Below are positions 3,905 through 47,197 of a stretch of 64,000 bases of DNA, piece after piece. Numbering within the stretch: position 1 is the first letter of the stretch; each line of letters opens with the position of its first letter. A model generated the notes under the pieces. It saw only the letters and a program-made list of their open reading frames with translations. It was not told the origin of the DNA and searched no databases. The stretch comes from Monocercomonoides exilis PA203 (taxonomy: Eukaryota > Protista > Preaxostyla), in NCBI GenBank assembly GCA_001643675.2, contig LSRY02000003.1:1674001-1738000 (forward strand), in the 5' to 3' direction. The position numbers and the translations under genes are program-made.

Positions 3905-4103
3905 ATTGAGCGCACACGAGAGAAACGAATGCAAACAAGAAATAAATTGATATCCACATGCACAAAAGCAAGCAATTTAACAGTATTATCAACGATTCAT
4001 AAGATTTCCTCTTCGATTTTCACTTCACGTTGCATCTCTCCCCTTTCCACCAATTAATCCTTCATTCATATTCATTCCAATCAAATTGCATCACAGTTTG
4101 AAA
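3905..4103 (+). promoter_or_regulatory. Conserved 5' flank (putative promoter/5'UTR) shared by A and G (~46189-46400, minus strand)
   Basis: CCACATG...TATTATCAACGAT...AAGATTTCCTCTTC...CCTTCATTCATATTCATTCCAATCAAATTGCATCAC precedes both ATGs. Confidence 0.5.
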
Positions 4104-6077
4104 ATGATTAGGATCACATTATCAGCTCAAATACTCGTCGCATTCCTCACCATAAATCTGGTTCGTGGAGAAGATATCGCAAACAGCATCATCAGAGGCG
4201 CTCGCCCAGACAAGGTGGAACATGCATCGGGAAATCACATCTGTTGTGCTCAAACAAGCTTCGCCCTCATCAACACCTCCTTGTGTGTGACCCGTCTCAA
4301 CATCATCCCTCTCAGCGGTTGCCCACTCCTCACTGCCCAACACCACTCTGCTGCCTCCATCTGCTCCTCCACTTGCACCATCCACCCACCTTCCCTCACC
4401 AACAACAACTACTACCAACAATGCCCCCTCTTCCTCTCTGCCCATGCCTCCCTCGCCCTCACAAACTTCTCCCTCACCACCCACCAACCAGCCATCTTCT
4501 CCTTCCCCCTCTTCTCCACCCCAAACAATCTCCTCCCACATGCCCACTCCCCAATCCCTGCCTCCTTCTCCATCTCCCACTCCTCTTTCTCCTCCTTCAT
4601 CCCCCTCATCCAGCCTTTCCTTTTTTCTCCTTCTTCCCTCTCTTCCCCATCCCCTTCTCCATCTCCATCCCTTTCCCCTTCTCCTTCATCTTCCTCATCC
4701 TCAACCCCATCATCTTCTTTTTCTTCCCCTTCTCCTTCCCCTTCCCCTTCCATTTCCTCTTTCTCTTCCCCTTCCCCCCTCCATATCCATCACCAATCCC
4801 ATCCTCACCTCCAAATCCACCTCAATCTCCATCTCTCAAACACCCTCTTCTCCAACATCTCATCTCCTCAATCCCCTCTATCACTTCCATCCCTTCCCTC
4901 ACACTCACTCAATTCATTCACCTCAACCACTTCTTCCTCTTCTTCCTCTTCCAACAACACCAACACCAATACAATCCCCTCTTTCTCCCTTCATTCATCC
5001 CTCTCCATCTACTCATCCCTCTTCCTCCACACCCACAACCCCATCGATGGAGCCATCCTCCCCAACCTCAACAGTCCATCCACCTCTCTCTCTGCCTTCA
5101 ACGCCTCTTTTCTTCACCAAACACGCTCTTCACCAAATGCTCCTGTTGAACACATTGGAAATGAAACTCACAGAAAATCACCTGGAAGATTGACTTCATT
5201 CGATGTAAACAGCCATCGCTTCGAATGGTGCATATGGGAAGATTCAACTGGTGGATCTTCAGCAGGTGGTGCACTTTTTGTAAACAAAGCAAATGCCAAC
5301 CTCACAATCACTTCTTGTTCGTTCAACAATTGTTCAACAAATGATCATGGTGGAGCGTTATATTGTGGATATTTGTTAAAAATTGATATCACAAAATCCA
5401 ATTTCACGAGTTGTTCAGCTGCTCATGGAGGAGCAAATTGCATCAGGTATCCGCAAACTAATTCTGTTTGGACATTCTCAGAAAACAGAGTGGAAAGTTG
5501 TTCAATCACAAACTGGTGCGGAACTGGCTGGTATTTCTTGCTAAACGACTTGTCTGCATCTGGTCAATTCCTGTTCACCAAATGCAAGTGTATTGCAAAT
5601 TCAGGTGGCGATTCTGCTGGTTCTCTCACATTTAATTATCCTCCACAAAATAAGCCAAATCAATTTTTGATTAATGATTGCCAGTTCATAATCAATAAAT
5701 TGACATCAACTTCAACTTCATGGGGAGGAGCTGCGCTGTGTTGCACAAACACCTTCACTTGGATGAGCGGGTTCAAATTCATCACATTTTGTTTCTTTGA
5801 TGGTAATTCAGCAGAAAATGGTAGAGGAAACGATGTGTTTTTCAATGGCAGCAGCATCACCCAATCCCCATTCAATCAGTGCGGCTCAACAACAGAATCA
5901 AAAAGAGTCTGGAATCAAGGAACTGCTGATAATGTTGAGTTCAACAGATGGCTCCCTCTCATTTTCTCTCTCTCCATTTTCCCCTCTCCTTGTATTCTCT
6001 CTTTTCTCTCGAATTTGATATATTTGATATCTTCTGAATTTCATCATTTTGCTTGCTGTTCCTCTTCTCAAATTTAA
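4104..6077 (+). CDS. Copy A: secreted/surface Pmp-like beta-helix protein (signal peptide + Ser/Pro/His-rich leader + variable Cys-rich beta-helix domain, hydrophobic tail)
   Basis: ATG at 4104 (MIRITLSAQILVAFLTINLVRG, signal-peptide-like). Repeats GGALFV, GGALYC, GGANCI, SFNNC, FFDGNSA...GRGNDVFF. Homology to the other copies ends at WLPLI (~5962). Confidence 0.75.
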   Translation: MIRITLSAQILVAFLTINLVRGEDIANSIIRGARPDKVEHASGNHICCAQTSFALINTSLCVTRLNIIPLSGCPLLTAQHHSAASICSSTCTIHPPSLTNNNYYQQCPLFLSAHASLALTNFSLTTHQPAIFSFPLFSTPNNLLPHAHSPIPASFSISHSSFSSFIPLIQPFLFSPSSLSSPSPSPSPSLSPSPSSSSSSTPSSSFSSPSPSPSPSISSFSSPSPLHIHHQSHPHLQIHLNLHLSNTLFSNISSPQSPLSLPSLPSHSLNSFTSTTSSSSSSSNNTNTNTIPSFSLHSSLSIYSSLFLHTHNPIDGAILPNLNSPSTSLSAFNASFLHQTRSSPNAPVEHIGNETHRKSPGRLTSFDVNSHRFEWCIWEDSTGGSSAGGALFVNKANANLTITSCSFNNCSTNDHGGALYCGYLLKIDITKSNFTSCSAAHGGANCIRYPQTNSVWTFSENRVESCSITNWCGTGWYFLLNDLSASGQFLFTKCKCIANSGGDSAGSLTFNYPPQNKPNQFLINDCQFIINKLTSTSTSWGGAALCCTNTFTWMSGFKFITFCFFDGNSAENGRGNDVFFNGSSITQSPFNQCGSTTESKRVWNQGTADNVEFNRWLPLIFSLSIFPSPCILSFLSNLIYLISSEFHHFACCSSSQI

Positions 6078-6545
6078 CCTCTGCTTACCCAAATATTTAT
6101 CTTCTCAAATTCAACTTCCAACTCAAATTTCGAATCTACACACCTTCTTCCTTTCTTCCAAAAATATCTTCAATCTTCTCAATCTCATTTCCATCTTGCA
6201 TGAACCCTTGATCAAGATTTTCTTTTCTTTCTCTTCATTTTCCAATCTATTTTCTGCTAATTTTAATTTGTAATTTTTTTCCTTCGGCTGAATAATTTCT
6301 TCGTTTCTTAATTTTGATCTTAATCCCTGAAGCTGATGCAATTGATGGAGAATTCAAGACAGATGAAGAATATGTTGAGGAAATTGTTGTGTTATATGTT
6401 GTTAATGTATTTGAAGCAGTAAGAAGAAGAAGAAGAAGAGAAATGAATTAATGAGATTATTGAAGGCAGAGAATTGTGAAGGCAGGGAATTGAGAAGGCA
6501 GGGAATTGAGAAGGCAGGGAATTGAGAAGGCAGATGATAACAAAC
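5962..6545 (+). repeat. Non-coding/degenerate linker shared downstream of copies A, D/D' and G
   Basis: 6101 CTTCTCAAATTCAACTTCCAAC matches 23406 TTCGCAAATTCAACTTCCAAC and the reverse complement of ~44070-44100. 17436 CAATTTTCAACAATTAATCATCTCA matches 43694 CAATTTTCAACAATTAATCATCTCA. Confidence 0.7.
6471..6533 (+). repeat. 17-bp tandem repeat GAATTGAGAAGGCAGGG x~3.7
   Basis: Directly visible in the sequence. Confidence 0.9.
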
Positions 6546-6630
6546 AAAAATGAAAATGTTCGCAAAAGCTGATCTTTTCTTGTCTTTCATCTTTTCTTGT
6601 CTTTCCTCTTTTATTTTTGCGTTCTTCTGA

Positions 6631-8931
6631 CAAATAAAATCCTTCTATTCATCCCTCTTCCTCCACGCCCACAATCCCATCGATGGCGCCATTCTCCCCA
6701 ACCTCAATAGCCCCTCCACTTCTCTCTCTGCCTTCAATGCTTCTTTCCTTCACCAAACTCGATCTTCATCAAATGCTGCTGTTGTATATGAAGGAAATGA
6801 AACTCACAGAAAATCACCTGGAAGATTGACTTCATTCGATGTAAACAGCCATCGCTTTGAGTGGTGCGAATGGAAAGATTCAAATGGAGGAAGTGATTGG
6901 GGTGGAGCTCTTAAAGTTAATTGCACAAATGCCAATCTCGCTATCACTTCTTGTTCGTTCAATAAATGTACATCAAGCAATGGTGAAGGAGGAGCAATAT
7001 TCTGTCAATATTTGTTACAAATCAGCATCACAAAATCGAATTTTACAAATTGCCAGGCGAGACATGGAGGCGCTGTGGAAATATGGAATCCACAATCTTA
7101 TTCTGTTTGGACATTCTCAGAAAACAACGTTGAAAGTAGCTCAATAACATATTGGTGCGGAACTGGCTGGTATTTTTATATTGGTGCTTTTCCATCAAAC
7201 GGCCAATTCCTGTTCACAAAATGCAAGTGCATTGCCAATTCTGGTGGTGATTCTGCTGGTTCTCTCACTTTTCAAAATCCACCAAGCAATAAGCCAAGTC
7301 AATTTATTGTAAATGATTGCCAGTTTATAAATAACAAATTAACTGCCTCTGTCAAATATGGAGGTGCTGCAATTTTCTTCAATTCAACTTATTCCTGGAT
7401 GAGTGGAAATAAATTCATCACATTCTGTTTCTTTGATGGCAACACTGCCAAAAATGGCAGGGGAAATGATGTGTTCTTCAGTGGCAATGCCATTACTCAA
7501 TCTCCGTTTGAGAATTGTGGATCAACAACTCCAACAAAAAGAGTGTATAATAACAATACAGCTGAAAACGCTGAATATAATAGCTGGCTCCCCCTCATTG
7601 CCCAGAACAAAATCGTTTCTAACAGCGGAACTGATGTCGATGTCTGTGGCAGGCCCCAACAGACCCCATGCGCCACCATCGAGTATGCCCTCACTGGCTT
7701 CATTTCCCTCCTCCAAGACGCCTCTCTCACCCTCCTCACCTCAATATTTGTTCCAACTCAAACACTAACCTTCAGCGCGGTTGACACAAAAATCACTGGA
7801 AATGGCACAACTGCCACCATCATCGCCTCCAGTGGCATTCCTCAACCACAAAACTCACATTCACACTCATCACAATCAACATCATCATTTTCTTCATTTT
7901 CATCGTCATATTCATCATATTCATCTGCATCTTCTTCACCAGATCCATCTGCCTCGTCTGCCCTCTTCCAACAGACACAGGGCTCCCTCACAGTCTCTGC
8001 CCTCGCCATCGCCCACAACTCCTCAAATCAAATCACTCCCATCCTCTTCCACCTCTCCGGTAACTCCCCTTCCCTCAATCTCAACACAACCACCATCACC
8101 GGAACAACCTCCATAACAATAAAAACTCCCCTCTTCTTCCTCACTGCTGGCTCCCTCTCCCTCAACCACACAGCAATCACCAGTCTCACCCTCAACAGCC
8201 AGAGCATCTTCCACCTCACCTCCCTCACAACACCCCTCACTCTCAACTCCTCCAACATCACCCACATCACCTCCACAGCCACTCCAGCCAGCTGTGCCCT
8301 CTCCTCTGCCACCTCCCCTGCCCTCTCCCTTTCCCTCGCCAACTGCACCATCACCAACATCGACTCAGCTCCGCAAAACCAACAGACTGCCACCAATGGC
8401 GGATGCATCTCATTCGCCTCATCTGCCCCTGCCAACTCATTTTCTGTGAGTGACACAAATTTCTCCACCTGCTCTGTGAGCGAGGATACAAGTTCTGGAG
8501 GAAGAGGCGGTGCTCTCATGATCGAGTACAACGATGATTCAGAAGTGTCATCCACAACCTTTTCCATCACCAATATCGTGTTTTCAGCCAACAAGGCCAG
8601 TGTCGGAAGAGATATGTATTTTGTGTGTGAATCCCTTGTCGCTTCTGTGAACGAGTCTTCCTTCGCCTTCATGGGAAACATCACTCAGAAAGACAACTCG
8701 GCTGTTGGACATGACAGAACAGAAGCATTCGGTGATTGGAATATCGATTTGTTTATATTTCTCAACGAGCACACAGCTGACAATGAATATGCGAATGATC
8801 ATCTTGGCATCAAAGCAATGAATTGCTGGCTATCAAAGATGCCCTTCAAGAGCACACGCAATGCGATGTGTCTTCTGGAGAAGGTGCAGATCATAAGGCA
8901 GAAATCATTTCATCAGCTGACTTGTCGGTGA
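6631..8931 (+). pseudogene. Copy B: leaderless beta-helix cassette (variable domain + long C-terminal 'constant' region), no in-frame ATG
   Basis: The frame is open from the TGA at 6628-6630 and family homology starts ~6650 (HAHNPIDGAILP). The C-terminal part contains CGRPQQTPCATIEYAL, NGGCISF, GRGGALMI, FSANKASVGRDMYF. The ORF-track start is a TTG. Confidence 0.7.
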
Positions 8932-9713
8932 ATTTATGTGCAAAAGAAGGCAAAGTCGAAGAAAGATGGGGAGATGGCACACAAAATAGAAGAAAATATC
9001 TTATATGTGCATTTGATGAAATCAACATTGCTTGTCGGGCATTTATTCTCTTCTTTCATAGAATTATCCATTAAATTTGCCTTTTCAAATAAATATGTTT
9101 CCCTCATCGTTTCATCTTCTCCGACATATTGAAGGCGTGTGACGTTGTGCAACCTGCCGAACGCTATTTTTGAGCTCATTCATTTCATAAAAGAATTGCT
9201 CTAATACTCTTTCTTTTTAATCTGCGCCTCTTTCAGCTTCCAAATAAAAAAAGGCAAAATCGTCCTCCTTTTTCGATTGCAAGTCTGCTGCTCTGCTTTT
9301 CTTGATTCGAAATCATATCTATTCTTATTTAATTTCGGCTTACCTTCCATCTTAGAATAAATATTAATCTTGGCTTTCTGAAAAAAGGTATAGGCAAGTT
9401 TTGGACTTGAATTTGAGGAAAGTTGAGCAATTTAAAAATTGCAATATTTTTGTTTCTCCTTGAAGAAGGCGTTGAAGAAGAACAGAACAAGAATTAAAAG
9501 ACTGATTTTGGCCCAAATAGACTTTTTATCACAAATAACTTGAATGGAAATATAAATTATACAGTTTTTGATATGTTGAGAGGAGGAAATGCAAATGAAA
9601 CAATTTTTGGCTCATGCGGTATTTCTACTGACAGAAAATGCATAAATGTTTCCGAATGAGGATGCTCTGCCAAAATGTCAAGCGAGAGGGAGCGGCAAAA
9701 TAGTCAAAGATCG

Positions 9714-9788
9714 ATGAACAAGACGAACAAGACGAACAAGACGAATAAGACGAATAAGACGAAGACGAAGACGAAGACGAAGAAGAAA
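9714..9788 (+). repeat. Compound microsatellite (GACGAACAA/GACGAATAA)n-(GACGAA)n; mirrored at ~31432-31506
   Basis: Directly visible in the sequence. Confidence 0.9.
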
Positions 9789-10531: not shown

Positions 10532-10532
<1 letters not shown>

Positions 10533-10562
<30 letters not shown>

Positions 10563-10658
10563 AAGAAGACGAAGAAGACGAAGAAGACGAAGAAGACGAA
10601 GAAGACGAAGAAGACGAAGAAGACGAAGAAGACGACGAAGACGACGAAGAAGAAGAAG
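10533..10658 (+). repeat. (GAA)n/(GAAGAAGAC)n microsatellite; mirrored at ~30561-30686
   Basis: Directly visible in the sequence. Confidence 0.9.
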
Positions 10659-15900: not shown

Positions 15901-16141
15901 CTTTTCATGAGCTTTATTTGCATCGATGAAGAAGCGAAATCAGATGAAGAAACCTCGAAGAAATATTTTCACCTGGGCTGATTTTAGGCTCTTTGAAAAA
16001 TAAGTAATGATACATTCTTCAGAAGAATGTGATATGAAAGCGCCTGAATTTTGCAATAATATGGAAAATGTCACAATAAGATGAAACGATTGAGGAAAGC
16101 CAAACATTAAAAATGACGAAAATGAAAGGAATAAAAAGAAA

Positions 16142-17362
16142 TCAGAAAAATGCATCTTTTCCTGTGATTTTTGTATTTGGGGCACGGAATGTGAGAGTCT
16201 TTGTTGGAGTGAAAGTTGAGACGAGAAGAGAGAGGGAGGCATCGCTGAAGGGAGCAACGCATCCGAGGGCATACTCCACAGTGGCACATGGGCTTTGCTG
16301 TGTTTTGCCACAGGCATCAGAATTAGTTCCACCATTTGCAACTATTTTGTTCTGGTCGATGATTGGAAGCCAACTGTTGTACACATCACTATCAGCTTTT
16401 CCATTATTCCACACTCTTTTTGATTCTGTTGTTGATCCACATTGCTGGAATGGAGATTGGGTGATGCTGCTTCCACCGAAGAACACGTCGTTTCCTCTGC
16501 CATTTTTGGCAGTGTTGCCATCAAAGAAACAGAAAGTAATGAATTTATTTCCGCTCATCCAGGAATAAGTGACATCCAAATAAATACCTGCCCCACCAAG
16601 AGTTGAAGTTGAACTTGTCAATTTGTTGTTTATGAATTGGCACTCATTAACAAAAAATTGATTTGGCTTATTTACAGGAGGATCATTGAATGTTAAAGAA
16701 CCAGCAGCATCACCACCTGAGTTTGAAATGCACTTGCATTTTGTGAACAGGAATTGACCGTTTGACGGAAAACCTCCAATCGCAAAATACCAACCAGTTC
16801 CACACCAATCAGTTATTGAACAACTTTCCACTCTGTTTTCTGAGAATGAATAAACAGAAATGGATTGCGGCCCAGCTATACAAATTGCTCCTCCATGAGC
16901 AGCTGAACAGCTTGTGAAATTGGATTTTGAGATGTCAATTTTCAGCAGGTTATCGCAACGTATTGCTCCACCATGATTTGTATTTGAACAATTGTTGAAC
17001 GAACAAGAAGTGATTGTGAGATTTGCATTAGTGCAATTAACTTTAAGAGCTCCGCCGTTATTTGATCCACCATTTGAATTATTCCATTCGCACCACTCAA
17101 ATTTATGGCTGTTAACATCAAATGAAGTCAATCTTCCAGGTGATTTTCTGTGAGTTTCATTTCCTTCATATACAACAGCAGCATTTGATGATGATCGAGT
17201 TTGATGGAGGAAAGATGTGTTGAAGGCAGAAAGAGAAGTGGAGGGGCTGTTGAGGGAAGGGAGAATGGCACCATCGATGGGGTTGTGAGTGTGGAGGAAG
17301 ATGGTTGAGTGGAATGCGAAAAATATTTGGAGGATTTTGTTTGCAAGAAGAAGAACACACAA
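16142..17362 (-). pseudogene. Copy C: leaderless beta-helix cassette truncated at 'TKITG'
   Basis: HTHNPIDG...WLPIIDQNKIVANGGTNSDACGKTQQSPCATVEYAL...NTKITGK, followed by T-rich non-homologous sequence. No in-frame ATG at the 5' end. Confidence 0.75.
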
Positions 17363-17832: not shown

Positions 17833-18972
17833 CTAATTCAGAGAAAAGCATTTGGATAGACAGAGGATAAATTTGAGTAAAGAAACAACAACAAGCAATT
17901 CAGGGTGATGCAATTCAGAAGAAATTAAAAATATGATTAACGAGAGAAAAGAAGGAATATGAGAAGCAGGAGGAAAAAATAATTGGAAAAGAGAAGATAG
18001 TGAAAAAAGCTTTTTGTTGGAAGAATTAGTTAAGAAAAGATGAGAGAGCCAGCCATTGTACTCGGTATTATCAGCTGTTCCTTGATTCCACACTCTTTTT
18101 GATGGAGTCGTTGAGCCACATTGCTGGAATGGAGATTGAGTGATGCTGCTGCCATTGAAAAAGACATCATTCCCTCTGCCATTCGTTGCGGAATTGCCAT
18201 CGAAGAAACAGAAAGTGATGAATTTAACTCCATTCATCCAAGAGTAAGTTCCATCAAAGTATATTCCGGCTCCACCCCAAGAGGATGATGAAGTTAACTT
18301 ATTATTGATGAACTGACACTCAACGATTGAAAACAGGTTGGGCTTGTTATTCGGAGGCCAATGAAACGTGAGAGAGCCAGTTGAATCGTTGCCAGAATTT
18401 GCGATGCACTTGCAGTTTGTGAACAAGAATTGAGCATTTGATGGCATATCATTGAGCCAGAAATACCAGCCAGTTCCACACCAATTTGTGATTGAGCAAC
18501 TTTCCACTTTGTTTTCTGAGAATGTCCAAGCAGAATTTGATTGAGGAGTCCATATCGCTGCTGCTCCTCCATGAAGCGCAGAACAGCTTGTGAAATTAGA
18601 TTTTGTGAGGCTGATTTTCAACAAGTAATCACAACATAACGCTCCACCACTATATCCACCTGTGGTTGAACAATTGTTGAATGAGCAAGAAGTGATCGAT
18701 AAATTTGCGTTTGTGCAATTGACTTTCAGAGCACCTCCTTGATCATTTCCGCTATATGAATCATTCCATTCACACCACTCAAAACGATGGCTGTTAACAT
18801 CAAATGAAGTCAATCTTCCAGGTGATTTTCTGTGAGTTTCATTTCCTTCATATACAACAGCAGCATTTGATGATGATCGAGTTTGGTGAAGAAAAGAGGT
18901 GTTGAAGGCAGAGAGAGAAGTGGAGGGGCTGTTGAGGTTGGGGAGGATGGCACCATCGATGGGGTTGTGAGT
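17833..18972 (-). pseudogene. Copy D: leaderless beta-helix cassette truncated at 'YNGWL'
   Basis: Homology begins at ACTCACAACCCCATCGATGG (~18972). The variable domain is intact and then runs into the shared linker. Confidence 0.75.
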
Positions 18973-21900
18973 CGTGTGAATGGAAACGTCAATAGAAAAA
19001 GAATCGAGCTATTCATATGCAGCATGTTGTTATGATGATACTTTCTAATGTTCAAATTCAAGTTAACGAAAAGAAGAAACCAAAAATCAACAGCCTTGTT
19101 CAAGTTTTCTATGGAATATTATTTTTGAACGAGTGAGCGATGCAGCAGGAGAAGAAGAAAAAGATTTTCATTAGAGTATGAATTGCTTTGTTGAAAGAAT
19201 GAGTGTTATTTGAAATTGGAATAACGCGTTGACTGAGATTATGATATTTGTTGTGAGCATTTTCATTCTGTTTGTATTCTGAACGATTGTGCTTTCTGTG
19301 AAAAAGGCATAAAAAGATTGATAAAAAATATCTGTTCTTATTTTTTAATTCTTTTCAAAAGTCAGTTGCACAAAAAAATAATTTGAAATGGGAATTTTTG
19401 TGCACAAAATGATGAGTTTGCGGTTTGCTATTATCAAAATTTGAAAGAGTTGTAAATTGCTAATTTTCACGAAACGGAGTTATTTGTTTGTTCAGATTTT
19501 TTTTTGAAAATATTTAAAATAAAAAATTTTTCCTGGGAATGTAGATAATTGTGGATATCTTTGTAACAGTTCAAGCCTCACAACAACTATTGATATTTAT
19601 TTGAATTACTGTTTTGATGTGGTTATTTTTTTTTTTTTTAATAAATAAAATAAATTATTGGCAAACCCATACCGCCATTGGTCATTGTGATTTCACTTCT
19701 TCTACAATATCCATATTAAAAGCAAAAAACATTTCTTTTCATTGAAAATATTTTCCAACAACAAAAAACACCATAACAAACTGAAATATTGATTGTTTAT
19801 GAATTCAATTTTTGAATACTCTTTTTTCGTTAAACTATTTTTTTTTAACTCATTTTTGAAATTCTATTTTGTCTGTCAAACATTTCGGTTTGAAAATTTG
19901 TAAGATGTCACGTATTGAGTCCCAATTTTAAGCTGTAAAATAATATGAATAATTCACCATACACCAAAAAATTATTCAAGACCGAAAAACTTTAATTCAA
20001 CATCGAAAATTATTATTCAACATCGATAAAGTTTAATTCAATATCTTAAATTTATTAAAATCAAAAATTTATACTCATATCAGTTTCTTTTTTTTTTTTT
20101 TAATAGGGTCAACTTTTTTATGGGACTTTTTCCTTTATTGGCACTTTTTTTGTTTTTGCATGCCAGTCATTCAATAAAGCTTGATGAACCACAACACTCG
20201 GGCGAGGGTGTTTATAAAACAAATACATTAAATTACCGGTTTGTTTTTTAAATATTGTTTATTTTTCGTAGAGATACAGCAATTTTTTATTGATTTTGAA
20301 GTGACTTTTTTCAGCCGAGGAAGCATTTCACAAAAATAAGAAATCCATTTTTAAAAACTACTAGCATTATCCTTTTTATATTCAAAATCTTAAGTTTAAC
20401 AACTTGTTTTTTCTTCAGTTTTTCACATTTTACTTTTTTTATCAACATGCGAACACAATTTTGAAAATTTCTTTGGTATTAAAATGAAGTGTTAAAAATA
20501 AAAATATGATATGAAAAATACACACTCTTATTAAGAAGTGTGAAAAAGGTTCAACATTAAAATTTTCTATTTGCATCAAACAGGTGAATGGTAACAACAT
20601 TGAATGATCTGAGATCACACTTATTCTATTTTGATGTGTTGAAAGCAATTAGAAAATTTTAATGTTGAACATTTTTCACACTTCTTAATAAGAGTGTGTA
20701 TTTTTCATATCATATTTTTATTTTTAACACTTCATTTTAATACCAAAGAAATTTTCAAAATTGTGTTCGCATGTTGATAAAAAAAGTAAAATGTGAAAAA
20801 CTGAAGAAAAAACAAGTTGTTAAACTTAAGATTTTGAATATAAAAAGGATAATGCTAGTAGTTTTTAAAAATGGATTTCTTATTTTTGTGAAATGCTTCC
20901 TCGGCTGAAAAAAGTCACTTCAAAATCAATAAAAAATTGCTGTATCTCTACGAAAAATAAACAATATTTAAAAAACAAACCGGTAATTTAATGTATTTGT
21001 TTTATAAACACCCTCGCCCGAGTGTTGTGGTTCATCAAGCTTTATTGAATGACTGGCATGCAAAAACAAAAAAAGTGCCAATAAAGGAAAAAGTCCCATA
21101 AAAAAGTTGACCCTATTAAAAAAAAAAAAAAAGAAACTGATATGAGTATAAATTTTTGATTTTAATAAATTTAAGATATTGAATTAAACTTTATCGATGT
21201 TGAATAATAATTTTCGATGTTGAATTAAAGTTTTTCGGTCTTGAATAATTTTTTGGTGTATGGTGAATTATTCATATTATTTTACAGCTTAAAATTGGGA
21301 CTCAATACGTGACATCTTACAAATTTTCAAACCGAAATGTTTGACAGACAAAATAGAATTTCAAAAATGAGTTAAAAAAAAATAGTTTAACGAAAAAAGA
21401 GTATTCAAAAATTGAATTCATAAACAATCAATATTTCAGTTTGTTATGGTGTTTTTTGTTGTTGGAAAATATTTTTCAATGAAAAGAAATGTTTTTTGCT
21501 TTTAATATGGATATTGTAGAAGAAGTGAAATCACAATGACCAATGGCGGTATGGGTTTGCCAATAATTTATTTTATTTATTAAAAAAAAAAAAAATAACC
21601 ACATCAAAACAGTAATTCAAATAAATATCAATAGTTGTTGTGAGGCTTGAACTGTTACAAAGATATCCACAATTATCTACATTCCCAGGAAAAAATTTTT
21701 TATTTTAAATATTTTCAAAAAAAAATCTGAACAAACAAATAACTCCGTTTCGTGAAAATTAGCAATTTACAACTCTTTCAAATTTTGATAATAGCAAACC
21801 GCAAACTCATCATTTTGTGCACAAAAATTCCCATTTCAAATTATTTTTTTGTGCAACTGACTTTTGAAAAGAATTAAAAAATAAGAACAGATATTTTTTA

Positions 21901-22249
21901 TCAATCTTTTTATGCCTTTTTCACAGAAAGCACAATCGTTCAGAATACAAACAGAATGAAAATGCTCACAACAAATATCATAATCTCAGTCAACGCGTTA
22001 TTCCAATTTCAAATAACACTCATTCTTTCAACAAAGCAATTCATACTCTAATGAAAATCTTTTTCTTCTTCTCCTGCTGCATCGCTCACTCGTTCAAAAA
22101 TAATATTCCATAGAAAACTTGAACAAGGCTGTTGATTTTTGGTTTCTTCTTTTCGTTAACTTGAATTTGAACATTAGAAAGTATCATCATAACAACATGC
22201 TGCATATGAATAGCTCGATTCTTTTTCTATTGACGTTTCCATTCACACG

Positions 22250-30687: not shown

Positions 30688-32288
30688 ATTTTTTTCCTCT
30701 TTTTTATCTTCTTCTTCCTCCTCATCATCATCTTTTTCTTATTATTTCTTTTTCAACTCCTTCAACTATTTTTTCAACTTCATAATCTTCCTTCAATGTC
30801 TGCCTCTTTTCCTTGCTGTTTAATTCCTTCAACCATCATAGTTTTCCCATGAATTCCAAAATAAGCCAATGAGAACATTCTCATTCGGAGAAATGCAATT
30901 CAAAAGCTTCAATTTCTCAGACGGACAAATTCTGTGCAAAACATTCCTTCTTCGCCTTCTTCTCATTCTTCTTCTTCGTCTTTGTCATCTCATTCATCAC
31001 CATCAATATCAAAACAAGCAGAACAATCTTCTTCTGCATCATATTCTTCACCTTATTCAACTTCTTCCTTTTCCTCTTCATCTTCGTATTCATCTTCTTT
31101 TGATGCCTTTTGTATTTTCAGAGCCAACCAACAAACGCCATTATTTTTCTGTTTTTGAAGAGAAAGGCAATGAAACCACACAAAGTTTGCCAATGAACTG
31201 AGGATATCAATCTTCATTGGCAAATAAATGCTAATTGGCCAATATTATATGTGATTGGGGTTTTTTATCACTTCCTAAGTCAACTTATCAAATGTGACAT
31301 TTAACCAACTGACAGCATCAAACAAGTCGTTTTCATCATCTTCTTCAGAAATGTTATTTGACTGATTGTTCATCTCTCAATTATCTCTTCTTCTTCCTCA
31401 TTATTTCCTTCATCTTCTTCAAATCCTATAGTTTCTTCTTCGTCTTCGTCTTCGTCTTCGTCTTATTCGTCTTATTCGTCTTGTTCGTCTTGTTCGTCTT
31501 GTTCATCGATCTTTGACTATTTTGCCGCTCCCTCTCGCTTGACATTTTGGCAGAGCATCCTCATTCGGAAACATTTATGCATTTTCTGTCAGTAGAAATA
31601 CCGCATGAGCCAAAAATTGTTTCATTTGCATTTCCTCCTCTCAACATATCAAAAACTGTATAATTTATATTTCCATTCAAGTTATTTGTGATAAAAAGTC
31701 TATTTGGGCCAAAATCAGTCTTTTAATTCTTGTTCTGTTCTTCTTCAACGCCTTCTTCAAGGAGAAACAAAAATATTGCAATTTTTAAATTGCTCAACTT
31801 TCCTCAAATTCAAGTCCAAAACTTGCCTATACCTTTTTTCAGAAAGCCAAGATTAATATTTATTCTAAGATGGAAGGTAAGCCGAAATTAAATAAGAATA
31901 GATATGATTTCGAATCAAGAAAAGCAGAGCAGCAGACTTGCAATCGAAAAAGGAGGACGATTTTGCCTTTTTTTATTTGGAAGCTGAAAGAGGCGCAGAT
32001 TAAAAAGAAAGAGTATTAGAGCAATTCTTTTATGAAATGAATGAGCTCAAAAATAGCGTTCGGCAGGTTGCACAACGTCACACGCCTTCAATATGTCGGA
32101 GAAGATGAAACGATGAGGGAAACATATTTATTTGAAAAGGCAAATTTAATGGATAATTCTATGAAAGAAGAGAATAAATGCCCGACAAGCAATGTTGATT
32201 TCATCAAATGCACATATAAGATATTTTCTTCTATTTTGTGTGCCATCTCCCCATCTTTCTTCGACTTTGCCTTCTTTTGCACATAAAT

Positions 32289-34589
32289 TCACCGACAAGT
32301 CAGCTGATGAAATGATTTCTGCCTTATGATCTGCACCTTCTCCAGAAGACACATCGCATTGCGTGTGCTCTTGAAGGGCATCTTTGATAGCCAGCAATTC
32401 ATTGCTTTGATGCCAAGATGATCATTCGCATATTCATTGTCAGCTGTGTGCTCGTTGAGAAATATAAACAAATCGATATTCCAATCACCGAATGCTTCTG
32501 TTCTGTCATGTCCAACAGCCGAGTTGTCTTTCTGAGTGATGTTTCCCATGAAGGCGAAGGAAGACTCGTTCACAGAAGCGACAAGGGATTCACACACAAA
32601 ATACATATCTCTTCCGACACTGGCCTTGTTGGCTGAAAACACGATATTGGTGATGGAAAAGGTTGTGGATGACACTTCTGAATCATCGTTGTACTCGATC
32701 ATGAGAGCACCGCCTCTTCCTCCAGAACTTGTATCCTCGCTCACAGAGCAGGTGGAGAAATTTGTGTCACTCACAGAAAATGAGTTGGCAGGGGCAGATG
32801 AGGCGAATGAGATGCATCCGCCATTGGTGGCAGTCTGTTGGTTTTGCGGAGCTGAGTCGATGTTGGTGATGGTGCAGTTGGCGAGGGAAAGGGAGAGGGC
32901 AGGGGAGGTGGCAGAGGAGAGGGCACAGCTGGCTGGAGTGGCTGTGGAGGTGATGTGGGTGATGTTGGAGGAGTTGAGAGTGAGGGGTGTTGTGAGGGAG
33001 GTGAGGTGGAAGATGCTCTGGCTGTTGAGGGTGAGACTGGTGATTGCTGTGTGGTTGAGGGAGAGGGAGCCAGCAGTGAGGAAGAAGAGGGGAGTTTTTA
33101 TTGTTATGGAGGTTGTTCCGGTGATGGTGGTTGTGTTGAGATTGAGGGAAGGGGAGTTACCGGAGAGGTGGAAGAGGATGGGAGTGATTTGATTTGAGGA
33201 GTTGTGGGCGATGGCGAGGGCAGAGACTGTGAGGGAGCCCTGTGTCTGTTGGAAGAGGGCAGACGAGGCAGATGGATCTGGTGAAGAAGATGCAGATGAA
33301 TATGATGAATATGACGATGAAAATGAAGAAAATGATGATGTTGATTGTGATGAGTGTGAATGTGAGTTTTGTGGTTGGGGAATGCCACTGGAGGCGATGA
33401 TGGTGGCAGTTGTGCCATTTCCAGTGATTATGGTATCAACCGCGCTGAAAGTGAGTGTTTGAGTTGGAACAAATGTTGAACTGAGGAGGGTGAGGGAGGC
33501 GTCTTGGAGGAGGGAAATGAAGCCAGTGAGGGCATACTCGATGGTGGCACATGGGGTCTGTTGGGGTCTGCCACAGATATCGACATCAGTTCCATTGCTG
33601 GCAACGATTTTGTTCTGGGCAATGAGGGGGAGCCAGCCATTATACACAGCGTTATCATCTTGTCCATTATTATACACTCTTTTTGATGGGGTTGTTGAGC
33701 CACAATTCTCAAATGGAGATTGGGTGATATCACTTCCGTAAAAGAACACATCATTTCCTCTGCCATTAGTTGCAGTGTTGCCATCGAAGAAGCAGAATGT
33801 GATGAATTTAAACCCGCTCATCCAGGAATAAGTTGAATGATAATAAATAGCAGCGCCTCCATAAGAAGAAGAAGCAGTCAAGTTGTTGTTAATAAATTGA
33901 CAATCATTGATCAAAAATTGATTTGGTTTGTTGTTTGGAGGATATGCAAATGTTAGAGAACCAGCAGAATCACCACCTGAGTTTGAGATGCACTTGCATT
34001 TGGAAAACAGGAATTGGCCGTTTGATGGAAAAGCACCAATATAAAAATACCAACCAGTTCCACACCAACCAGATATTGAACAATTTTCGACTTTGTTTTC
34101 TGAATGGTAATAAGCAGAATTTTGCTGTGGATTTGTTGTATGGACTGCTCCTCCATGCAACGCAGAGCAATTTGTAAAATTGGATGTTGAAATATCAATC
34201 TTCAACGAAAGATTACAATACAACGCTCCACCATGATCATCAGTTGAACAATTATTGAATGAGCAAGAAATGATTGTGAGATTGGCATTCGTGCAAGCAA
34301 CATAAAGTGCTCCACCCCAATCGCTTCCACTATTTGAATCATTCCATTCGCACCATTCAAAGCGATGACTGTTAACATCAAAGGAATCCAGTCTTCCAGG
34401 TGTTTCTCGTTGAGATTCATTTCCAATATGAACAACAGCAGCATTTGGTGAAGAGCGTGTTTGGTGAAGAAAAGAGGTGTTGAATGCAGAGAGAGAAGTG
34501 GATGGGCTGTTGAGGTTGGGGAGAATGGCTCCATCGATGGGGTTGTGGGCATGGAGGAAGATGGATGAGTGGATGGAGAAAGAATGCAA
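32289..34589 (-). pseudogene. Copy E: leaderless cassette with the same C-terminal region as B but a different variable domain
   Basis: The protein is identical to B from ITGNGTTATII to the stop. The N-terminal domain differs (GGALYVACT, GGALYCNLS, GGAVHTTN, LTFAYPP). It starts at a TTG right after an in-frame TAA. Confidence 0.75.
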
Positions 34590-35775: not shown

Positions 35776-35812
<37 letters not shown>

Positions 35813-38928: not shown

Positions 38929-39464
38929 GTTTTGTTTGAAATATGAATTTTTGAAAAATAAAAATATTCTATCAAATGAAAAGTGAATCAGATTTATAAT
39001 ATTTTTTAAAAGAAAATTCTGAGTATAAACAAAATTTTTTTTCACTAAAAAATGAAATCTTTAAAGGAAGTTTCTTTCTCAAAATATAAAAAAAAATTAA
39101 ATAACATATATATATATATAATTCACAAAAAAATAAAATGCTTTGTTTTTAAAAGACAAGCGTTTCAAAAGCATATTTTTCAAAAAAAACATGGTCTTGC
39201 TGTTTTTCAAATGCATAAATGGAAAATAAAAAAACAATGTGTTGAAACAACATTATAATATTGAAATGAGAATTGATAGATTATTTGGAATTATTTTTTA
39301 TGCTTTTATTGAATAAAATACAACCAGATAAAATGTGAAAGTTATTAAAAAAACGCTTTTTCCATGTTCCTAAAAATCTTCATTGTTCAAAGCATAAACA
39401 TAAAAGTTGTTTCAATGAAACGCATCACATTCCTAACTTCTTTTCATTTATTCGACTTCTTTCT

Positions 39465-40867
39465 CTATCCATTCAACCCTTCCATCTCTTCCCTCCCACT
39501 CACTCAATCCTTTCATCTCAACCATTTCTTCCTCCTCTTCCACTTCCACTTTCACCAACACAAACTCCAATGCAATCCCCTCTTTCTCCCTTCATTCATC
39601 CCTCTCCATCCACTCAACCATCTTCATCCACACCCACAACCCCATCGATGGTGCCATCCTCCCCAACCTCAACAGCCCATCCACTTCTTTCTCAACCTTC
39701 AACACTTCTTTTCTTCACCAAACACGTTCTTCATCAAATGCTGCTGTTGTATATGAAGGAAATGAAACTCACAGAAAATCACCTGGAAGATTGACTTCAT
39801 TTGATGTTAACAGCCATCGTTTTGAGTGGTGTGAATGGAATGATTCATATAGCGGAAATGATCAAGGAGGTGCTCTGAAAGTCAATTGCACAAACGCAAA
39901 TTTATCGATCACTTCTTGCTCATTCAACAATTGTTCAACAAGTGATCATGGTGGAGCATTATATTGTAACGGTTTGTTAAATATCAACATTGCTAAATCT
40001 AATTTCACAAGTTGTTTTGCGTTACATGGAGGAGCAAATTGTATTGGTGGGTCACAATCAAATTCTGTTTATTCATTCTCAGAAAACAGAGTGGAAGGTT
40101 GTAATATAAAGGGCATTTATGGAACAGGTTGGTATTTTTGGATTGGCGATTTTCCATCAAATGGTCAATTCTTATTCACCAAATGCAAGTGCATTGCAAA
40201 CTCTGGTGGTGATTCTGCAGGCTCTCTCACATTTCATTGGCCTCCGAATAGCAAGCCCAACCTGTTTTCAATCGTTGAGTGTCAGTTCATCAATAATAAG
40301 TTAACTTCATCATCCACTTATGGCGGAGCAGGAATATACTTTGATGGAACTTACTCTTGGATGAATGGAATAAAATTCATCACTTTCTGTTTCTTCGATG
40401 GAAACACAGCCACAAATGGAAGGGGAAACGATGTGTTCTTCAGTGGCAATGCAATCACCCAATCTCCATTTGAGAATTGTGGCTCAACAACCCCAACTAA
40501 AAGAGTGTATAATAATGGACAAGATGATAACGCTGTGTATAATGGCTGGCTTCCCCTCATTTCCCAGAACAAAATCGTTGCCAACAATGGAACTGATGCT
40601 GATGTCTGTGGCAGACCCCAACAGACCCCATGTGCCACCATCGAGTATGCCCTCACTGGCTTCATTTCCCTCCTCCAAGACGCCTCCCTCACCCTCCTCA
40701 CCTCAACATTTGTTCCTTCTCAAACACTCACTTTCAGCGCGGTTGATACCATAATCACTGGAAATGATAAACTTTTTCTTACGTTCTTTCCTTTCCTTCA
40801 TTTTCTCATTTTCACCAATTCACATGTCATAGAAAAATTCATGAGCTTTCATAGCTTTTTCAACTGA
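39465..40867 (+). pseudogene. Copy F: cassette retaining the 3' part of the leader, truncated at 'TIITGN'
   Basis: The leader remnant ...NTNSNAIPSFSLHSSLSIHSTIFIHTHNPIDG runs in frame into the variable domain. No ATG. The breakpoint is the same as in C. Confidence 0.75.
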
Positions 40868-43800
40868 CGTATATATCATCACTAATTTTTTCAAAATCCT
40901 TAACGTCAGCTCAAATAAAAATATTTCTTCAAAATTTCTTCATTTATTTTATCTTTTTCATCAAATGCAAATTCCGCTTGCTGCTTAAATAAATGTTTTC
41001 TATTATTCTTCTCTTCAAAATGCATTTCTTCAAGCATAGCAACAATCTCTTCAAAACCTTCAATTTCTTTTATCACTTCCATTTCTCCTTTTTTGAGCGC
41101 TGCAGAATCTCTCATTTCATAGAATTATCCTTCGATTATTTGTTTTCTAATCAATTATGTTCTCCTCATTTAATCATCCTCTCGTTCTGTTGAAGGCACA
41201 TGATGCTGTGAAATTTGTCGAAGGTCATCCTCATAATCATTCATCCCAAACATCCTATCCTGTCCTGTTCTTTATGTTTTCGGTGAATTCTTTCATCTTC
41301 CAAACCAAAAAGTCAGAGGCAATCTCTATTTTTTGCTGCATGCCTGATGTTCGGCTATTCTGGATCAAAATTTCACATTTCATTGCCGTGTTAGGTCCGG
41401 CTGAAATTCTGTGAAAGTGTGAATATTTCTTTTGCGTTTCCTATTTGAGCAGATTTTAATGCCTCTTGATGAATTTGATGAAGTTGAACGAAATGATAAA
41501 TTCAATATTATTTTTGATGTTCATCGAAGAAGACATTGAAGAATAAAAGGAGGATCACAATTGTTGAAATGAAGATAGATGCTGTTTCAATGTGCGAATG
41601 AATGAGGAAGAATGAAGTTGAAGCTGAAGAAGAAGAGGAAAGAGACGAAGAAGAGGAATAGGTTGAGTCAAAGAAGAAGAAGAAGAAGAAATGGTTGAGT
41701 GAAGAAGATTTTGTGTGTTTTTGGCTATGCGATTCATAACAGGCGTGCTTGTCGCTGAATGAGCAAGTGAATTGTGAGAAGGCGAATTTTGTGTTTGTAA
41801 ATCGAGAAATGAGGAAGATGGTTGATTGAATGAAAGGGGATTATCTGAAGATGAAGAAGAAGAAGAAGATGAAGAAGAAGATGCAGTTGAGAAATGCGGA
41901 ATCAGTCGAACGATATTTATGATGTTGAGAATAATTTGTATGAAGTCGTTGATTGGCTGAAGCATCTTATTCGATGTGTAAACTTCAGATTGGTTAGAAA
42001 AACATAATCACAATATTTGTGACGAACAGATTGTGGAAATCAATCTTGCTGTATATTCACAACTTCAGTTCACTTTCTTTTTGCGATTTCCCCTCCTTTC
42101 CCCTCAAAAATAGAAAATGTTGATTTTTCTCAATTTCCATTCCTTTCCATTCCCCGCTTCCATTCAACCCCCAAAATTCATCAGAAAATATCAATCCCCT
42201 CCTTTTCTTCATCTTTCCCACTCTCTACCAAAATATCTACTCCTCTCAAAAAAAAAAAAATATCCCTCTTCCATTTGAACACTTCAGAATATTCTTCTTC
42301 TTTCCCGCCTTTGCCCTCTTTTCCTTTTTTTCAAATTCCATTTCTCCAATTTGTCTCAAATATCTTCCTCACCATCCTCAGCCACTTCTCTACATATTTA
42401 CTATATTATCTTCTCAAAATCTCCACCTTCTCTTCCCCATCTTTTTGTCTCAGAATTTCTTTCATTCAAAAACCCCTCTTGAAATATAAACATTCCGTAA
42501 AACTCTCAACTCCCACCCCCTGCCAAAAAAAATATTCTTCCATCTCTTCTCTGCCCCATATCCCTCATGTGCAAGGTGTTGATGAGATAGACATCAAATA
42601 CTTCTTTGTGTGGTTGAGAATATTATTAAAGGAGATGATCATGCCAAAAACAGAAAAAACCCCTTTGGACAGGCATCACAATGTGTACGGGCTGAGAAGA
42701 CCCTCCAGTGAGATATTCAATGTATTTTGTGAAGAAGGATGCAATGCTGTATTCAACCATTCTGAGACTGAAATGAAGAGATTGATTTATTTTTGGAATG
42801 ATGATTGTTGTGGAAATGAGTGTGCTTGGCGAAAAACAGTCGAAGAGCAGTTTGGCATTTATTTATTTTTATTTATATGAATATTTATCTGTTGAATGTT
42901 TTTGTGTTTCTTTCATGGCAGAAGGCGGAAAGGAATGAAAATGAATGAAAGCGGGATATCTCGTTGTGCATGGTGGCTATGGAGTTGGGAGAGCGAATTC
43001 ATATGGAAAGTGCCCAGGATGAAGGGTTTGGGAAGGGAATTGGAGATGATATTTTCAGAGGAAAAACAAGGATATTTTTCAATGATGAGAATGGAATTTG
43101 AGCAGAAAACGTAAATTTCACATTTTTCAGAAGAACAAGAAATAGATGCATTTGATAGAGAAACAACTGATGGAAAGGATGATTTGCGAATCAGATGATG
43201 AAACACTTGAAAAAGGAAGAAATAATGAAATTGAATTGAAGAAAACAGTTGCCAATTCAACATAAAGTAGAAAATTGCTTATAAAAATGTTTATAAGGTT
43301 TGTTGTTATTTTTTTTTTGAAGTAATTATTATTTTGTTTTAAGAATGCTGAAAGAATGAAGGATTAGATGGCTTTGAAGAAGAAGAAAAGTTGGGAAGGA
43401 AGAATAAAGAAGGACAGATGAAATGCGGATATTTCGAAGATGCTTGGTATTGGGCTTTGACAAATAATTATTTTTGAGGAAAGATGATTTATTGTGAAAA
43501 AAGGGAAGCGAAAAATTGAAAGAGATGGAATGAAAAATAGATTGACGCATGCTTATTATTTTTAGATGGAGAGAGAAAGAGAATTGAGCTGAAAGTGAAA
43601 AAGTATTCAGAGATTTCTCCTTTGCAGAAGAAGACACAGAAGAAGAGAAATTCAATGAATTTCTCTGTTGATGTAAATTGACACTCATCTTCTCAATTTT
43701 CAACAATTAATCATCTCATTCAATCCATTCATTCATAATTACCATCATCAACTTCTTCAAATAAATCAACAACATTTCACACAGCTTCTTCTTCATTATC

Positions 43801-44343
43801 ATCATTCACATCATCTGATTGAATTTCTTCACATTCTGCTTTGGCATCAGAGATCAAGAGATAAATGAAGAAGTAAACAGAGAAATTATACATCCGAAGG
43901 AAATATTCACAAATTAAAATGAGAAAAAGAAGAATGAAAGAAGAGGAGAAAGAGAAAGAGAAAGAGAACGAAGAGCGTGTTTTGAGAGGAGAACTGGAAA
44001 GGAAATAGAATAGAGAAAATGAAAGAGGGTTTTTTGAATGAAAGGAAGAAGATGAACGAATTTCAAATATGAGTTGGAAAAAAAATTTGAGAAGAGAAGG
44101 AAGGTTGAACAGCACAAAAGAGATTATTTGGATAAGAAAAGGAAGATGCTTGAGAAGAGAAAAAAATTGAAAAGCAGAACAACAAAGAAGACAATACGAT
44201 GAATTACAAGAGAAATCAAAAGTTATGAAAAAAGAGAGAAAAGAAGGAAAGAGATGAGAGGAGGTGATAGAGAAAGCAAAAATGAGAGATGGAAGCAGGA
44301 AAAGCATTTCATTGGAGAATTTGGAAAGAAAAGCTAGAATCGG

Positions 44344-46188
44344 TCATTTTTTCTCAGCGTTTTCAGTTTGTCCATTATTATACACTCTTTGTGTTGGAGT
44401 TGTTGATCCACAATTCTCAAATGGGGATTGGGCTATAGAAATGCCATTGAAAAACACATCGTTTCCTCTGCCATTTTTGGCAGTGTTGCCATCGAAGAAA
44501 CAGAATGTGATGAATTTATTTCCACTCATCCAAGTGAAGGTGTTTGTGCAACACAGCGCAGCTCCTCCCCATGAAGTTGAAGTTGATGTCAATTTGTTGT
44601 TTATGAATTGGCAATCATTAACTAGAAATTTCTCTGGTTTATTTTGTGGAGGCCAATGAAATGTGAGAGAGCCAGCAGAATCACCACCAGAATTTGCAAT
44701 GCACTTGCATTTGGAAAACAGGAATTGACCGTTTGATGGAAAAGCACCAATATAAAAATACCAACCAGTTCCGCACCAATTTGTGATCGAACAACTTTCC
44801 ACCCTGTTTTCTGAGAATGTCCAAACAGAATTTGATTGTTGTCCACCAATACAATTTGCTCCTCCATGAGCAGCTGAACAACTCGTGAAATTGGATTTTG
44901 TGATATCAATTTTTAACAAATATCCACAATATAACGCTCCACCATGATCATTTGTTGAACAATTGTTGAACGAACAAGAAGTGATTGTGAGGTTGGCATT
45001 TGCTTTGTTTACAAAAAGTGCACCACCTGCTGAAGATCCACCAGTTGAATCTTCCCATTCGCACCATTCAAAGAGATAGCTATTCAAAGTAGTAAAGGAC
45101 AATCTTCCAGGTTTCGCTCTTTGGGTTTCATTTCCAATATATTTTACAGGATCATTTGATGAAGAACGTGTTTGGTGAAGAAAAGAGGTGTTGAAGGCAG
45201 AGAGAGAAGTGGATGGGCTGTTGAGGTTGGGGAGAATGGCACCATCGATGGGGTTGTGGGTGTGGAGGAAGATGGATGAGTGGATGGAAAGGGATGAGTG
45301 AAGAGAGAAGGAGGGAATTGTATTGGTGTTGGTGTTGGTGGAAGAGGAAGAAGAGGAAGAGGTGGTTGAGGTGAATGGATTGAGTGAATGTGAAGAAAGA
45401 GATGGAAGTGATAGAGTGGATTGGGGAGAGGAGATGTTGGAGAAGAGGGTGTTTGAGAGATGGAGGTTGAGGTGGATTTGGAGGTGGGGATGGGATTGGT
45501 GATGGTTATGGAGAGGGGAAGGGAAAGAGGAAATAGAAGGGGAAAGGGAAGGGGAAGGGGAAGAAAAAGAAGATGATGAGGATGAGGATGAGGATGAGGA
45601 AGATGAAGGAGAAGGGGAAAGGGATGGAGATGGAGAAGTGGAAGGGGAAGAGAGGGAAGAAGGAGAAAAAAGGAAGGGCTGGATGAGGGGGATGAAGGAG
45701 GAGAAAGAGGAGTGGGAGATGGAGAAGGAGGCAGGGATTGGGGAGTGGGCATGTGGGAGGAGATTGTTTGGGGTGGAGAAGAGGGGGAAGGAGAAGATGG
45801 CAGGTTGGTGGGTGATGAGGGAGAAGTTTGTGAGGGCGAGGGAGGCATGGGCAGAGAGGAAGAGGGGGCATTGTTGGTAGTAGTTGTTGTTGGTGAGGGA
45901 AGGTGGGTGGATGGTGCAAGTGGAGGAGCAGATGGAGGCAGCAGAGTGGTGTTGGGCAGTGAGGAGTGGGCAACCGCTGAGAGGGATGATGTTGAGACGG
46001 GTCACACACAAGGAGGTGTTGATGAGGGCGAAGCTTGTTTGAGCACAACAGATGTGATTTCCCGATGCATGTTCCACCTTGTCTGTGTGAGCGCCTCTGA
46101 TGATGCTGTTTGCGATATCTTCTCCACGAACCAGATTTATGGTGAGGAATGCGACGAGTATCTGAGCTGATAATGTGATCCTAATCAT
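44344..46188 (-). CDS. Copy G: signal peptide + Ser/Pro-rich leader + variable beta-helix domain (inverted paralog of A)
   Basis: ATG at 46188 (MIRITLSAQILVAFLTINLVRG). The leader is nearly identical to that of A. Stop after RVYNNGQTENAEKK. Confidence 0.75.
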   Translation of the reverse strand: MIRITLSAQILVAFLTINLVRGEDIANSIIRGAHTDKVEHASGNHICCAQTSFALINTSLCVTRLNIIPLSGCPLLTAQHHSAASICSSTCTIHPPSLTNNNYYQQCPLFLSAHASLALTNFSLITHQPAIFSFPLFSTPNNLLPHAHSPIPASFSISHSSFSSFIPLIQPFLFSPSSLSSPSTSPSPSLSPSPSSSSSSSSSSSSSFSSPSPSLSPSISSFPSPLHNHHQSHPHLQIHLNLHLSNTLFSNISSPQSTLSLPSLSSHSLNPFTSTTSSSSSSSTNTNTNTIPSFSLHSSLSIHSSIFLHTHNPIDGAILPNLNSPSTSLSAFNTSFLHQTRSSSNDPVKYIGNETQRAKPGRLSFTTLNSYLFEWCEWEDSTGGSSAGGALFVNKANANLTITSCSFNNCSTNDHGGALYCGYLLKIDITKSNFTSCSAAHGGANCIGGQQSNSVWTFSENRVESCSITNWCGTGWYFYIGAFPSNGQFLFSKCKCIANSGGDSAGSLTFHWPPQNKPEKFLVNDCQFINNKLTSTSTSWGGAALCCTNTFTWMSGNKFITFCFFDGNTAKNGRGNDVFFNGISIAQSPFENCGSTTPTQRVYNNGQTENAEKK

Positions 46189-47197
46189 TTTCAAACCGTG
46201 ATGCAATTTGATTGGAATGAATATGAATGAAGGCTTAATTGGCGGAGAGGGGAGAAATGCAATGTGAAGGGAAAATAGAAGAGGAAATCTTGTGGATCGT
46301 TGATAATATTGTTAAATTACTAACTTTTATACATGTGGATAACAATTTGTTTTTCTGTTGCTTTCACATTTATATTTTTCTTTCACTACTCTTGTGTTCG
46401 ATGGATTCTAATCAAAGGGAATAGTGTTCATGAATTGCGAGTTTTGATGATAAATTGATGATCTGTTTGCACTGTTGAAAACAATTTTTTGTTTGTGATT
46501 AAAAAAATACTCATATTTTGGTGATTTTGCATTCCAAATAATTGATTTTAGCAACAAACTTCACTTCAAACATTCAAATATGAAATCGTTTTCAATAACG
46601 TTGGAAAAAATGAGAAAAGATAATATTATTCAATCAATTTCCAATTGAAATACTAAAAACGTTGTGAGACAAATGGGGACTCTTAAGGAACACCAGAAAT
46701 CGTCTTTTTTTAGAAATTAAAGTGATTGACATTATATTTAAGTATTTGTATTAATAATCAAATGAGTGAAATCATTCGATGTTGAAATAAAAATTTTCCA
46801 AAATATAAATGTTTCCTGAAAAATGAAATTATTAGTCATATTTTTTAATGATAGCCGTGGAAAAATTAGAAACATTTTTACCGAGGAACATCATTCGGTG
46901 AGACTTTCTCCATCTCATTATCCAAATGGATTTGAATCGTGATATTCATTTTCATGAGAATTGTCATTAACATCAAGAGTTTCTTTTACATTTATTTCGA
47001 AAATAATCTCGGAAAAATTGCGTTATATCGGACAAAGCAAAATCTTGTTTTTGTATATATCATACTCAAATTAGTATTTGACACATAAAAAAAATAATTT
47101 TAATGCTCGGAAAACAGTTTCTCATAAATACAAAATTATTTTGAAAATATGAAAATCTGTAGTTATATTAAAAAATAGGGTCTTTGAAAAAAGTGTA

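Follow-up and report, generated by a model that had tools for sequence, protein, structure and literature searches.

The leaderless copies of a repeated surface-receptor domain in Monocercomonoides exilis (assembly GCA_001643675.2) are kept open far beyond neutral expectation and exchange segments with one another. Given the evidence set out below, we incline to the view that these cassettes are a reservoir of variants of the domain that acts over evolutionary time, in one gene-conversion pool with dispersed complete genes, with many possible recipient genes in place of one or two expression sites. The window analysed (the whole stretch of DNA, 64 kb) holds nine copies of the domain, here called V, with anchors between 5037 and 45255. 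A preliminary description had counted nine copies of a ~250-aa domain; nine were found, and seven are independent sequences, given that C' and D' are palindrome twins of C and D, and the conserved unit is of ~300 codons, cap included. All nine, A and G among them, are modules of a large receptor-(pseudo)kinase family cut short ahead of the membrane anchor, each keeping the hypervariable V tip, and they probably form one stretch of a wider cassette array. Its features are as follows.

3927–4103, plus strand: 5' flank common to A and G.
4104–6077, plus strand: copy A (V anchor 5037), with an ATG, signal-like N-terminus, leader (4104–5036), V (5037–5963) and ~38 codons of unrelated T-rich read-through; truncated receptor gene.
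5964–6640, plus strand: non-coding spacer 3' of an A/D/G-type cassette end, homologous to the D–C spacer (79%) and the G 3' flank (74%).
6641–9032, plus strand: copy B (V anchor 6673), leaderless V and ~450 stalk codons, open to 8931; decayed gene remnant from ~8760 to 9032.
6640–34577, no strand: 28-kb palindrome; arms near-identical inward of ~7842/33375, imperfect centre at ~20550–20670, outer ends within the differing V of B and E.
16156–17313, minus strand: copy C (V anchor 17284), leaderless V and ~65 codons; C/F-type end.
18038–18982, minus strand: copy D (V anchor 18966), V alone, leaderless; A/D/G-type end.
22240–23184, plus strand: copy D' (V anchor 22256), palindrome twin of D.
23909–25066, plus strand: copy C' (V anchor 23938), palindrome twin of C.
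32188–34583, minus strand: copy E (V anchor 34544), leaderless V and a stalk piece as in B.
39462–40769, plus strand: copy F (V anchor 39638), the last ~55 leader codons, V and ~65 stalk codons; a mosaic sharing 218 nt exactly with D.
44344–46188, minus strand: copy G (V anchor 45255), with an ATG, leader ~96% identical to that of A, V and a stop directly after V; truncated receptor gene.
46189–46365, minus strand: 5' flank of G, common with A.

As had been noted earlier, A and G alone have an upstream in-frame methionine (ATG at 4104 and at 46188), a hydrophobic N-terminus and a leader. They share ~180 bp of 5' flank and bracket the array in inverted orientation. Their ORFs (657 aa in A, 614 aa in G) consist of signal, leader and V, and that of A terminates in a hydrophobic stretch. 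Every V domain in the window is open, free of stops and frameshifts at 73–83% pairwise amino acid identity to A, in agreement with the first reading. The ends of the copies fall into three classes, an A/D/G type, a C/F type and a B/E type.

V is predicted to be a right-handed beta-helix. An AlphaFold model (pLDDT 61; 80–90 in the core) gave no significant match in a Foldseek search, and an exhaustive structural aligner placed it against right-handed parallel beta-helices with Z ~15 over ~240 residues. GGA(I/L/V) and FxxN repeats are present in the V alignment. Homology searches with the repeated domain found close relatives only among M. exilis proteins, and the distant profile matches are Pmp-repeat proteins. 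No Pfam family reached threshold for V, including PF02415 (Chlam_PMP), for which the gathering threshold was missed (best E 4.3). The Pmp-like beta-helix proposed from the sequence is in keeping with fold, motifs and distant relatives alike. Variable positions cluster directly behind the GGA-type motifs and in the loops preceding them, with entropy profiles along V that correlate between cassettes and complete genes (r=0.83). In beta-helix enzymes, ligand is bound on the face that corresponds to these variable positions. Judging from the fold, V may bind variable ligands, likely microbial or host surface molecules. Trichomonad and chlamydial Pmp proteins share with V the GGA(I/L) and FxxN-type repeats and the right-handed beta-helix, with a transmembrane anchor in the trichomonad type (PMC6701047), but V lies under the Chlam_PMP threshold and the complete genes here end in a degenerate TKL-type kinase domain.

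Homology of the V, leader and stalk of the window copies to complete genes with a transmembrane helix and a PF07714 match indicates that V is the N-terminal tip of a single-pass receptor-(pseudo)kinase. At all nine loci read as DNA (nine of at least 45 complete genes, three of the nine picked for similarity), the complete form is an uninterrupted single ORF of ~2,200–3,100 codons, in the order signal, leader, V, long stalk, one transmembrane helix and, in most, a degenerate kinase C-lobe. The PF07714 match covers the C-lobe only, and neither HRD nor DFG motifs were visible in the three complete genes inspected. The stalk is more homogeneous than V (dS 0.2–0.3 within the subfamily). The family to which the complete genes belong is the expanded tyrosine-kinase-like (TKL) family of M. 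exilis (PMC6759080, PMC8767320). At least 45 long proteins of the V subfamily are annotated, most with the N-terminus missing. The annotation splits one intact 2933-codon ORF (L002, 10001–18802) into separate genes, MONOS_9448 and a kinase gene; the gene models of most family members begin at an internal methionine, and small antisense ORFs are called across their leaders. Public annotation lacks the cassettes and shortens the N-termini of most complete genes.

The constraint on the cassettes is that of coding sequence. Over the V of B–F, dS is 0.74 (~0.75) and dN/dS is 0.21, falling to 0.04 at the columns invariant in complete genes. At framework columns, 14 leaderless copies show a pN of 0.03 against a pS of 0.50, and private framework changes are no commoner in cassettes than in complete genes. 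At 0.1 substitutions per site, the chance that a copy of V stays stop-free is 1–2%. The dN/dS and ORF-survival comparisons, suggested earlier as checks on the leaderless copies, are both far from neutral evolution. The adjacent sequence had been called decayed, and the flanks are indeed non-coding and indel-ridden: flanks of the same modules are mutually homologous (71–79%, z 13–23) with 18–28 indels per 700 bp whose length is not a multiple of three. Gene decay as such is demonstrable only in the B/E 3' flank (z=9 against triplet shuffles; nhmmer match to 9032). That all flanks are remains of decayed genes was plausible by eye but failed against triplet shuffles for A, C, D, F and G. Beyond V, the tails show no in-frame conservation, and in the copies at L005 they contain stops.

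The same architecture recurs outside the window, where a search for further cassettes had been proposed. Modules and flanks of the window recur at L005 and L008, both on contig LSRY02000003.1. Loci L005, L008 and L010 hold 11 further truncated copies, all centred on V with an open core and erosion confined to the edges. V is retained in all 20 of the truncated copies sampled across four loci, and ~107 kb of array DNA yielded no remnant of stalk, transmembrane helix or kinase only. At L010 (20175–21392, minus strand), an isolated leaderless cassette lies near a complete gene and is open, with substitutions at normally invariant residues; it is perhaps a copy in early decay.

The copies were described as mosaics of each other with common breakpoints, and this is borne out by the three classes of ends and by exact tracts of 222 nt (A–G), 218 nt (D–F) and 99 nt (C–D) amid copies that are ~78% identical. 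None of 2000 permutations reached this in a tract test that is liberal, conservation varying along V. Median longest tracts are 71 nt among B–F, 44 nt between A or G and B–F, and 30 nt between the window and distant cassettes. Exact tracts shared by cassettes and complete genes have a median of 32 nt and a maximum of 56 nt, values inflated by the three genes picked for similarity, and those between complete genes have a median of 28.5 nt and a maximum of 59 nt. From these medians we conclude that exchange declines with distance and that cassettes and complete genes belong to one pool. The patchwork exchange is real and is strongest between neighbours. The long exact tracts are local and run from cassette to cassette, not between cassette and gene, and the nine complete genes read gave no instance of transfer into them from a cassette.

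Cassettes are also recipients. At L005 (14496–21235), a 6.7-kb palindrome carries two cassettes head to head, and their identity breaks off within V, as it does in the window palindrome, where arm identity stops at ~7842, with the stalk of B and E common and V differing at 15–38 per 100 nt. The L005 twins show no differences as far as position 217 of V, and are 20–40% different within V and 4–8% different in the adjoining non-coding 3' flank, so the V of cassettes has been rewritten in place; stops at the V 3' edge are common to both twins. This is not the one-way transfer with unchanged cassettes of the classical systems, and the longest tracts are mutual. A and G receive no more from B–F than B–F from each other. 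The proposed archive of leaderless donors keeps its open frames and segmental exchange and loses its preferred recipients.

In the reservoir that we favour, segmental gene conversion over tens to ~200 nt, commonest between neighbours and inverted copies, would account for the shuffling of V patches seen among cassettes. The patches common to cassettes and complete genes suggest occasional exchange between the two, whichever its direction. Where cassette patches reach working receptors, an open and framework-correct V would be favoured, and back-conversion from complete genes may also repair cassettes. Palindromes and inverted copies may promote such exchange.

The main rival, unlikely in our estimation yet to be taken seriously, is that the cassettes arose as side products of segmental duplication where palindromes abound, have no role, and stay open only because frequent conversion, from the many complete genes and among themselves, overwrites damage. 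Modules recur at other loci with 72–81% identical flanks, as old segmental duplicates would, most exchange is local, and with a few hundred family members a dS of ~0.75 implies that conversion is frequent relative to mutation. The eroding edges (the V 3' stops at L005) and the isolated L010 cassette also fit passive persistence. However, in a passive-refresh model the probability that 15 of 15 copies are intact is ≤0.01 for most plausible settings, reaching 0.1–0.6 at most when the family is large, V indels are rare and flow is mainly from gene to cassette, and the dominance of local exchange between cassettes weakens repair of this kind. Passive refreshment also leaves the V-centring of every remnant unexplained, given that the more homogeneous stalk should refresh more easily.

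It is considerably less probable that the truncated copies are themselves expressed, with A and G secreted as V-only proteins (decoys or opsonins) and the leaderless copies translated after leader-exon splicing or from non-ATG starts, so that ordinary purifying selection would hold the frames open. The clean ORFs of A and G, the hydrophobic end of A and a constraint pattern like that of coding genes are in its favour. Against it, no GT donor lies near the leader–V junction of A, and the contigs, which are insensitive, showed no GT-AG joint between A and B that was confined to RNA; the RNA joints occur in DNA as well, and those between A and B are explained by mosaic paralogues. Mutually exclusive exons as in Dscam would likewise be without a splice donor after the leader and without spliced leader–cassette transcripts among these insensitive contigs. 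V and spacer have equal ratios of RNA to DNA, with the lowest ratio at the start of A, A-specific RNA contigs have a depth of 4–6, as does the spacer, and the RNA signal of the family tracks DNA copy number. Since these are assembled contigs from two culture RNA runs, which cannot give RNA levels, the finding of no A or G signal above non-coding spacer is an absence of support and not a proof of silence. Condition-specific expression of A or G is possible.

The single RNA contig over the start of A comes from a third paralogue, with a G at 4119, a base found in neither A nor G. This ~98% identical A/G-type 5' end (window 4060–4264) lies elsewhere in the genome and has a depth of 37 in one RNA run. 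It may belong to a complete gene ancestral to A and G; a protein database search found no complete gene with an A-type leader, though the reads show the third close copy.

Programmed antigenic variation, in which A and G are expressed and receive tracts from B–F in one direction, on the model of vlsE or pilE, was the original proposal and is now largely refuted; we regard it as very improbable. In its favour, A and G have an ATG, a signal-like start and an open leader (A–G leader dN/dS 0.22), they differ block-wise within V, and they bracket the array in inverted orientation. However, exact matches of at least 30 nt to B–F cover 21% of the V of A and 29% of that of G, compared with 44–52% for D and F, and most blocks of difference between A and G have no exact donor in B–F. 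The donors are ~78% and not ~90% identical, and the RNA evidence is as given above. Relative to a complete gene of 2933 residues, A and G cover ~20–650, while copies of the C/F type end at ~712 and those of the B/E type at ~1082; the module made up by the 3' junction and flank in A, D and G is also present on leaderless cassettes in L005 and L008. No part of the window encodes a transmembrane helix or a kinase, so no local deletion or splice can yield a receptor. A deletion joining A to B (or G to E) was rejected as a way of building a gene, as its product would still be without ~1,800 codons, the helix and the kinase. The many complete genes elsewhere are a further objection. Truncated after V at the breakpoint type of leaderless cassettes, not favoured as recipients and with RNA no higher than the spacer, A and G are truncated receptor-gene modules and are not supported as expression sites.

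That the palindrome and some copies arose in assembly, from long-read fold-back or collapsed haplotypes, is hardly credible: the differences between the arms (1 mismatch and 12 gap openings in 12,728 aligned columns, C' and D' mirroring C and D) are almost all homopolymer indels, as an artefact would predict, but for A, the spacer and B the DNA runs contain contigs free of mismatches and at single-copy depth, so that these three are real, the centre as assembled is an imperfect, graded inverted repeat, both outer ends run on into different sequence, the architecture recurs at L005, and seven distinct copies are left even if C' and D' are false.

Among known systems, the cassettes have the anatomy of vls, msp2 and Ig pseudogenes. 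Silent open variable-region cassettes and segmental conversion are both present, but neither a single expression site nor one-way transfer was found, and for this reason we do not classify the locus as antigenic variation. Borrelia vls cassettes likewise are without promoter and ATG, comprise the variable domain only and have open frames with in-frame indels; they vary in variable regions on a conserved framework, undergo segmental conversion and have inverted repeats nearby (PMC11499132). Unlike vls, with its one expression site, contiguous ~90% array and unidirectional transfer, M. exilis has at least 45 dispersed complete genes and spaced cassettes, ~78% identical, that are also recipients. 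The functional pseudogenes of Anaplasma msp2/p44 (PMC2789410) and the mosaic VSG archive of Trypanosoma brucei (PMC3708902) are large clustered archives whose incomplete copies have conserved ends around a variable core, as here. Those archives supply a defined expression site exposed to antibody pressure, whereas in M. exilis, a commensal, no such site was found and the protein is a receptor of signalling type. Pseudogenes of VSG frequently carry frameshifts.

Chicken and rabbit Ig V pseudogenes and lamprey VLR cassettes are, like the leaderless copies here, variable-domain fragments without leaders, kept open as templates for recognition receptors; their conversion is somatic, deaminase-driven and aimed at one rearranged locus. 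Plant RLK/NLR and animal MHC clusters undergo gene conversion with truncated paralogues, and resemble M. exilis in their many functional receptor genes, shuffling of ectodomains over evolutionary time and bias to local exchange. Truncated copies in those clusters usually decay, whereas those in M. exilis are uniformly V-centred and open.

We found no literature specific to the V family or to a cassette architecture in oxymonads. Archives of silent cassettes have been described in pathogens exposed to antibody attack and in the immune genes of vertebrates. If the reservoir is real, an archive for multigene signalling receptors in a mitochondrion-free protist described as commensal (PMC6759080) extends the principle from evasion to recognition, and offers a testable case of selection acting on untranslated reading frames. 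It would also explain part of the 35% of the M. exilis genome that is 'unclassified repeat' content overlapping kinase genes (PMC8767320). A bolder form, to which we give little credence, is an active anticipatory system in which palindrome V cassettes rewrite the tips of dozens of receptor pseudokinases, varying between clones, as a unicellular analogue of Ig/VLR gene conversion that tracks gut bacteria, phages or host factors. From the window itself, the result is that the leader-bearing copies were tested and rejected as expression sites.

Several other features of the window were recorded. Two AT-rich inverted-repeat elements, at 982–3053 (arms of ~850 bp at 94%) and at 48618–48976 (a ~350-bp hairpin), are likely MITE-like repeats, and relatives of both adjoin complete receptor genes in L001, L002, L004, L008 and L009. 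On the minus strand at 51631–54015 is an intronless ORF of 794 aa resembling class II (B12-dependent type) ribonucleotide reductase, with weak Pfam matches, and on the plus strand at 54474–55382 is a DTW-domain gene (tRNA aminocarboxypropyl-transferase family). The downstream flank of G (42900–43872) matches, at 81% identity, the DNA immediately 5' of the complete gene in L010.
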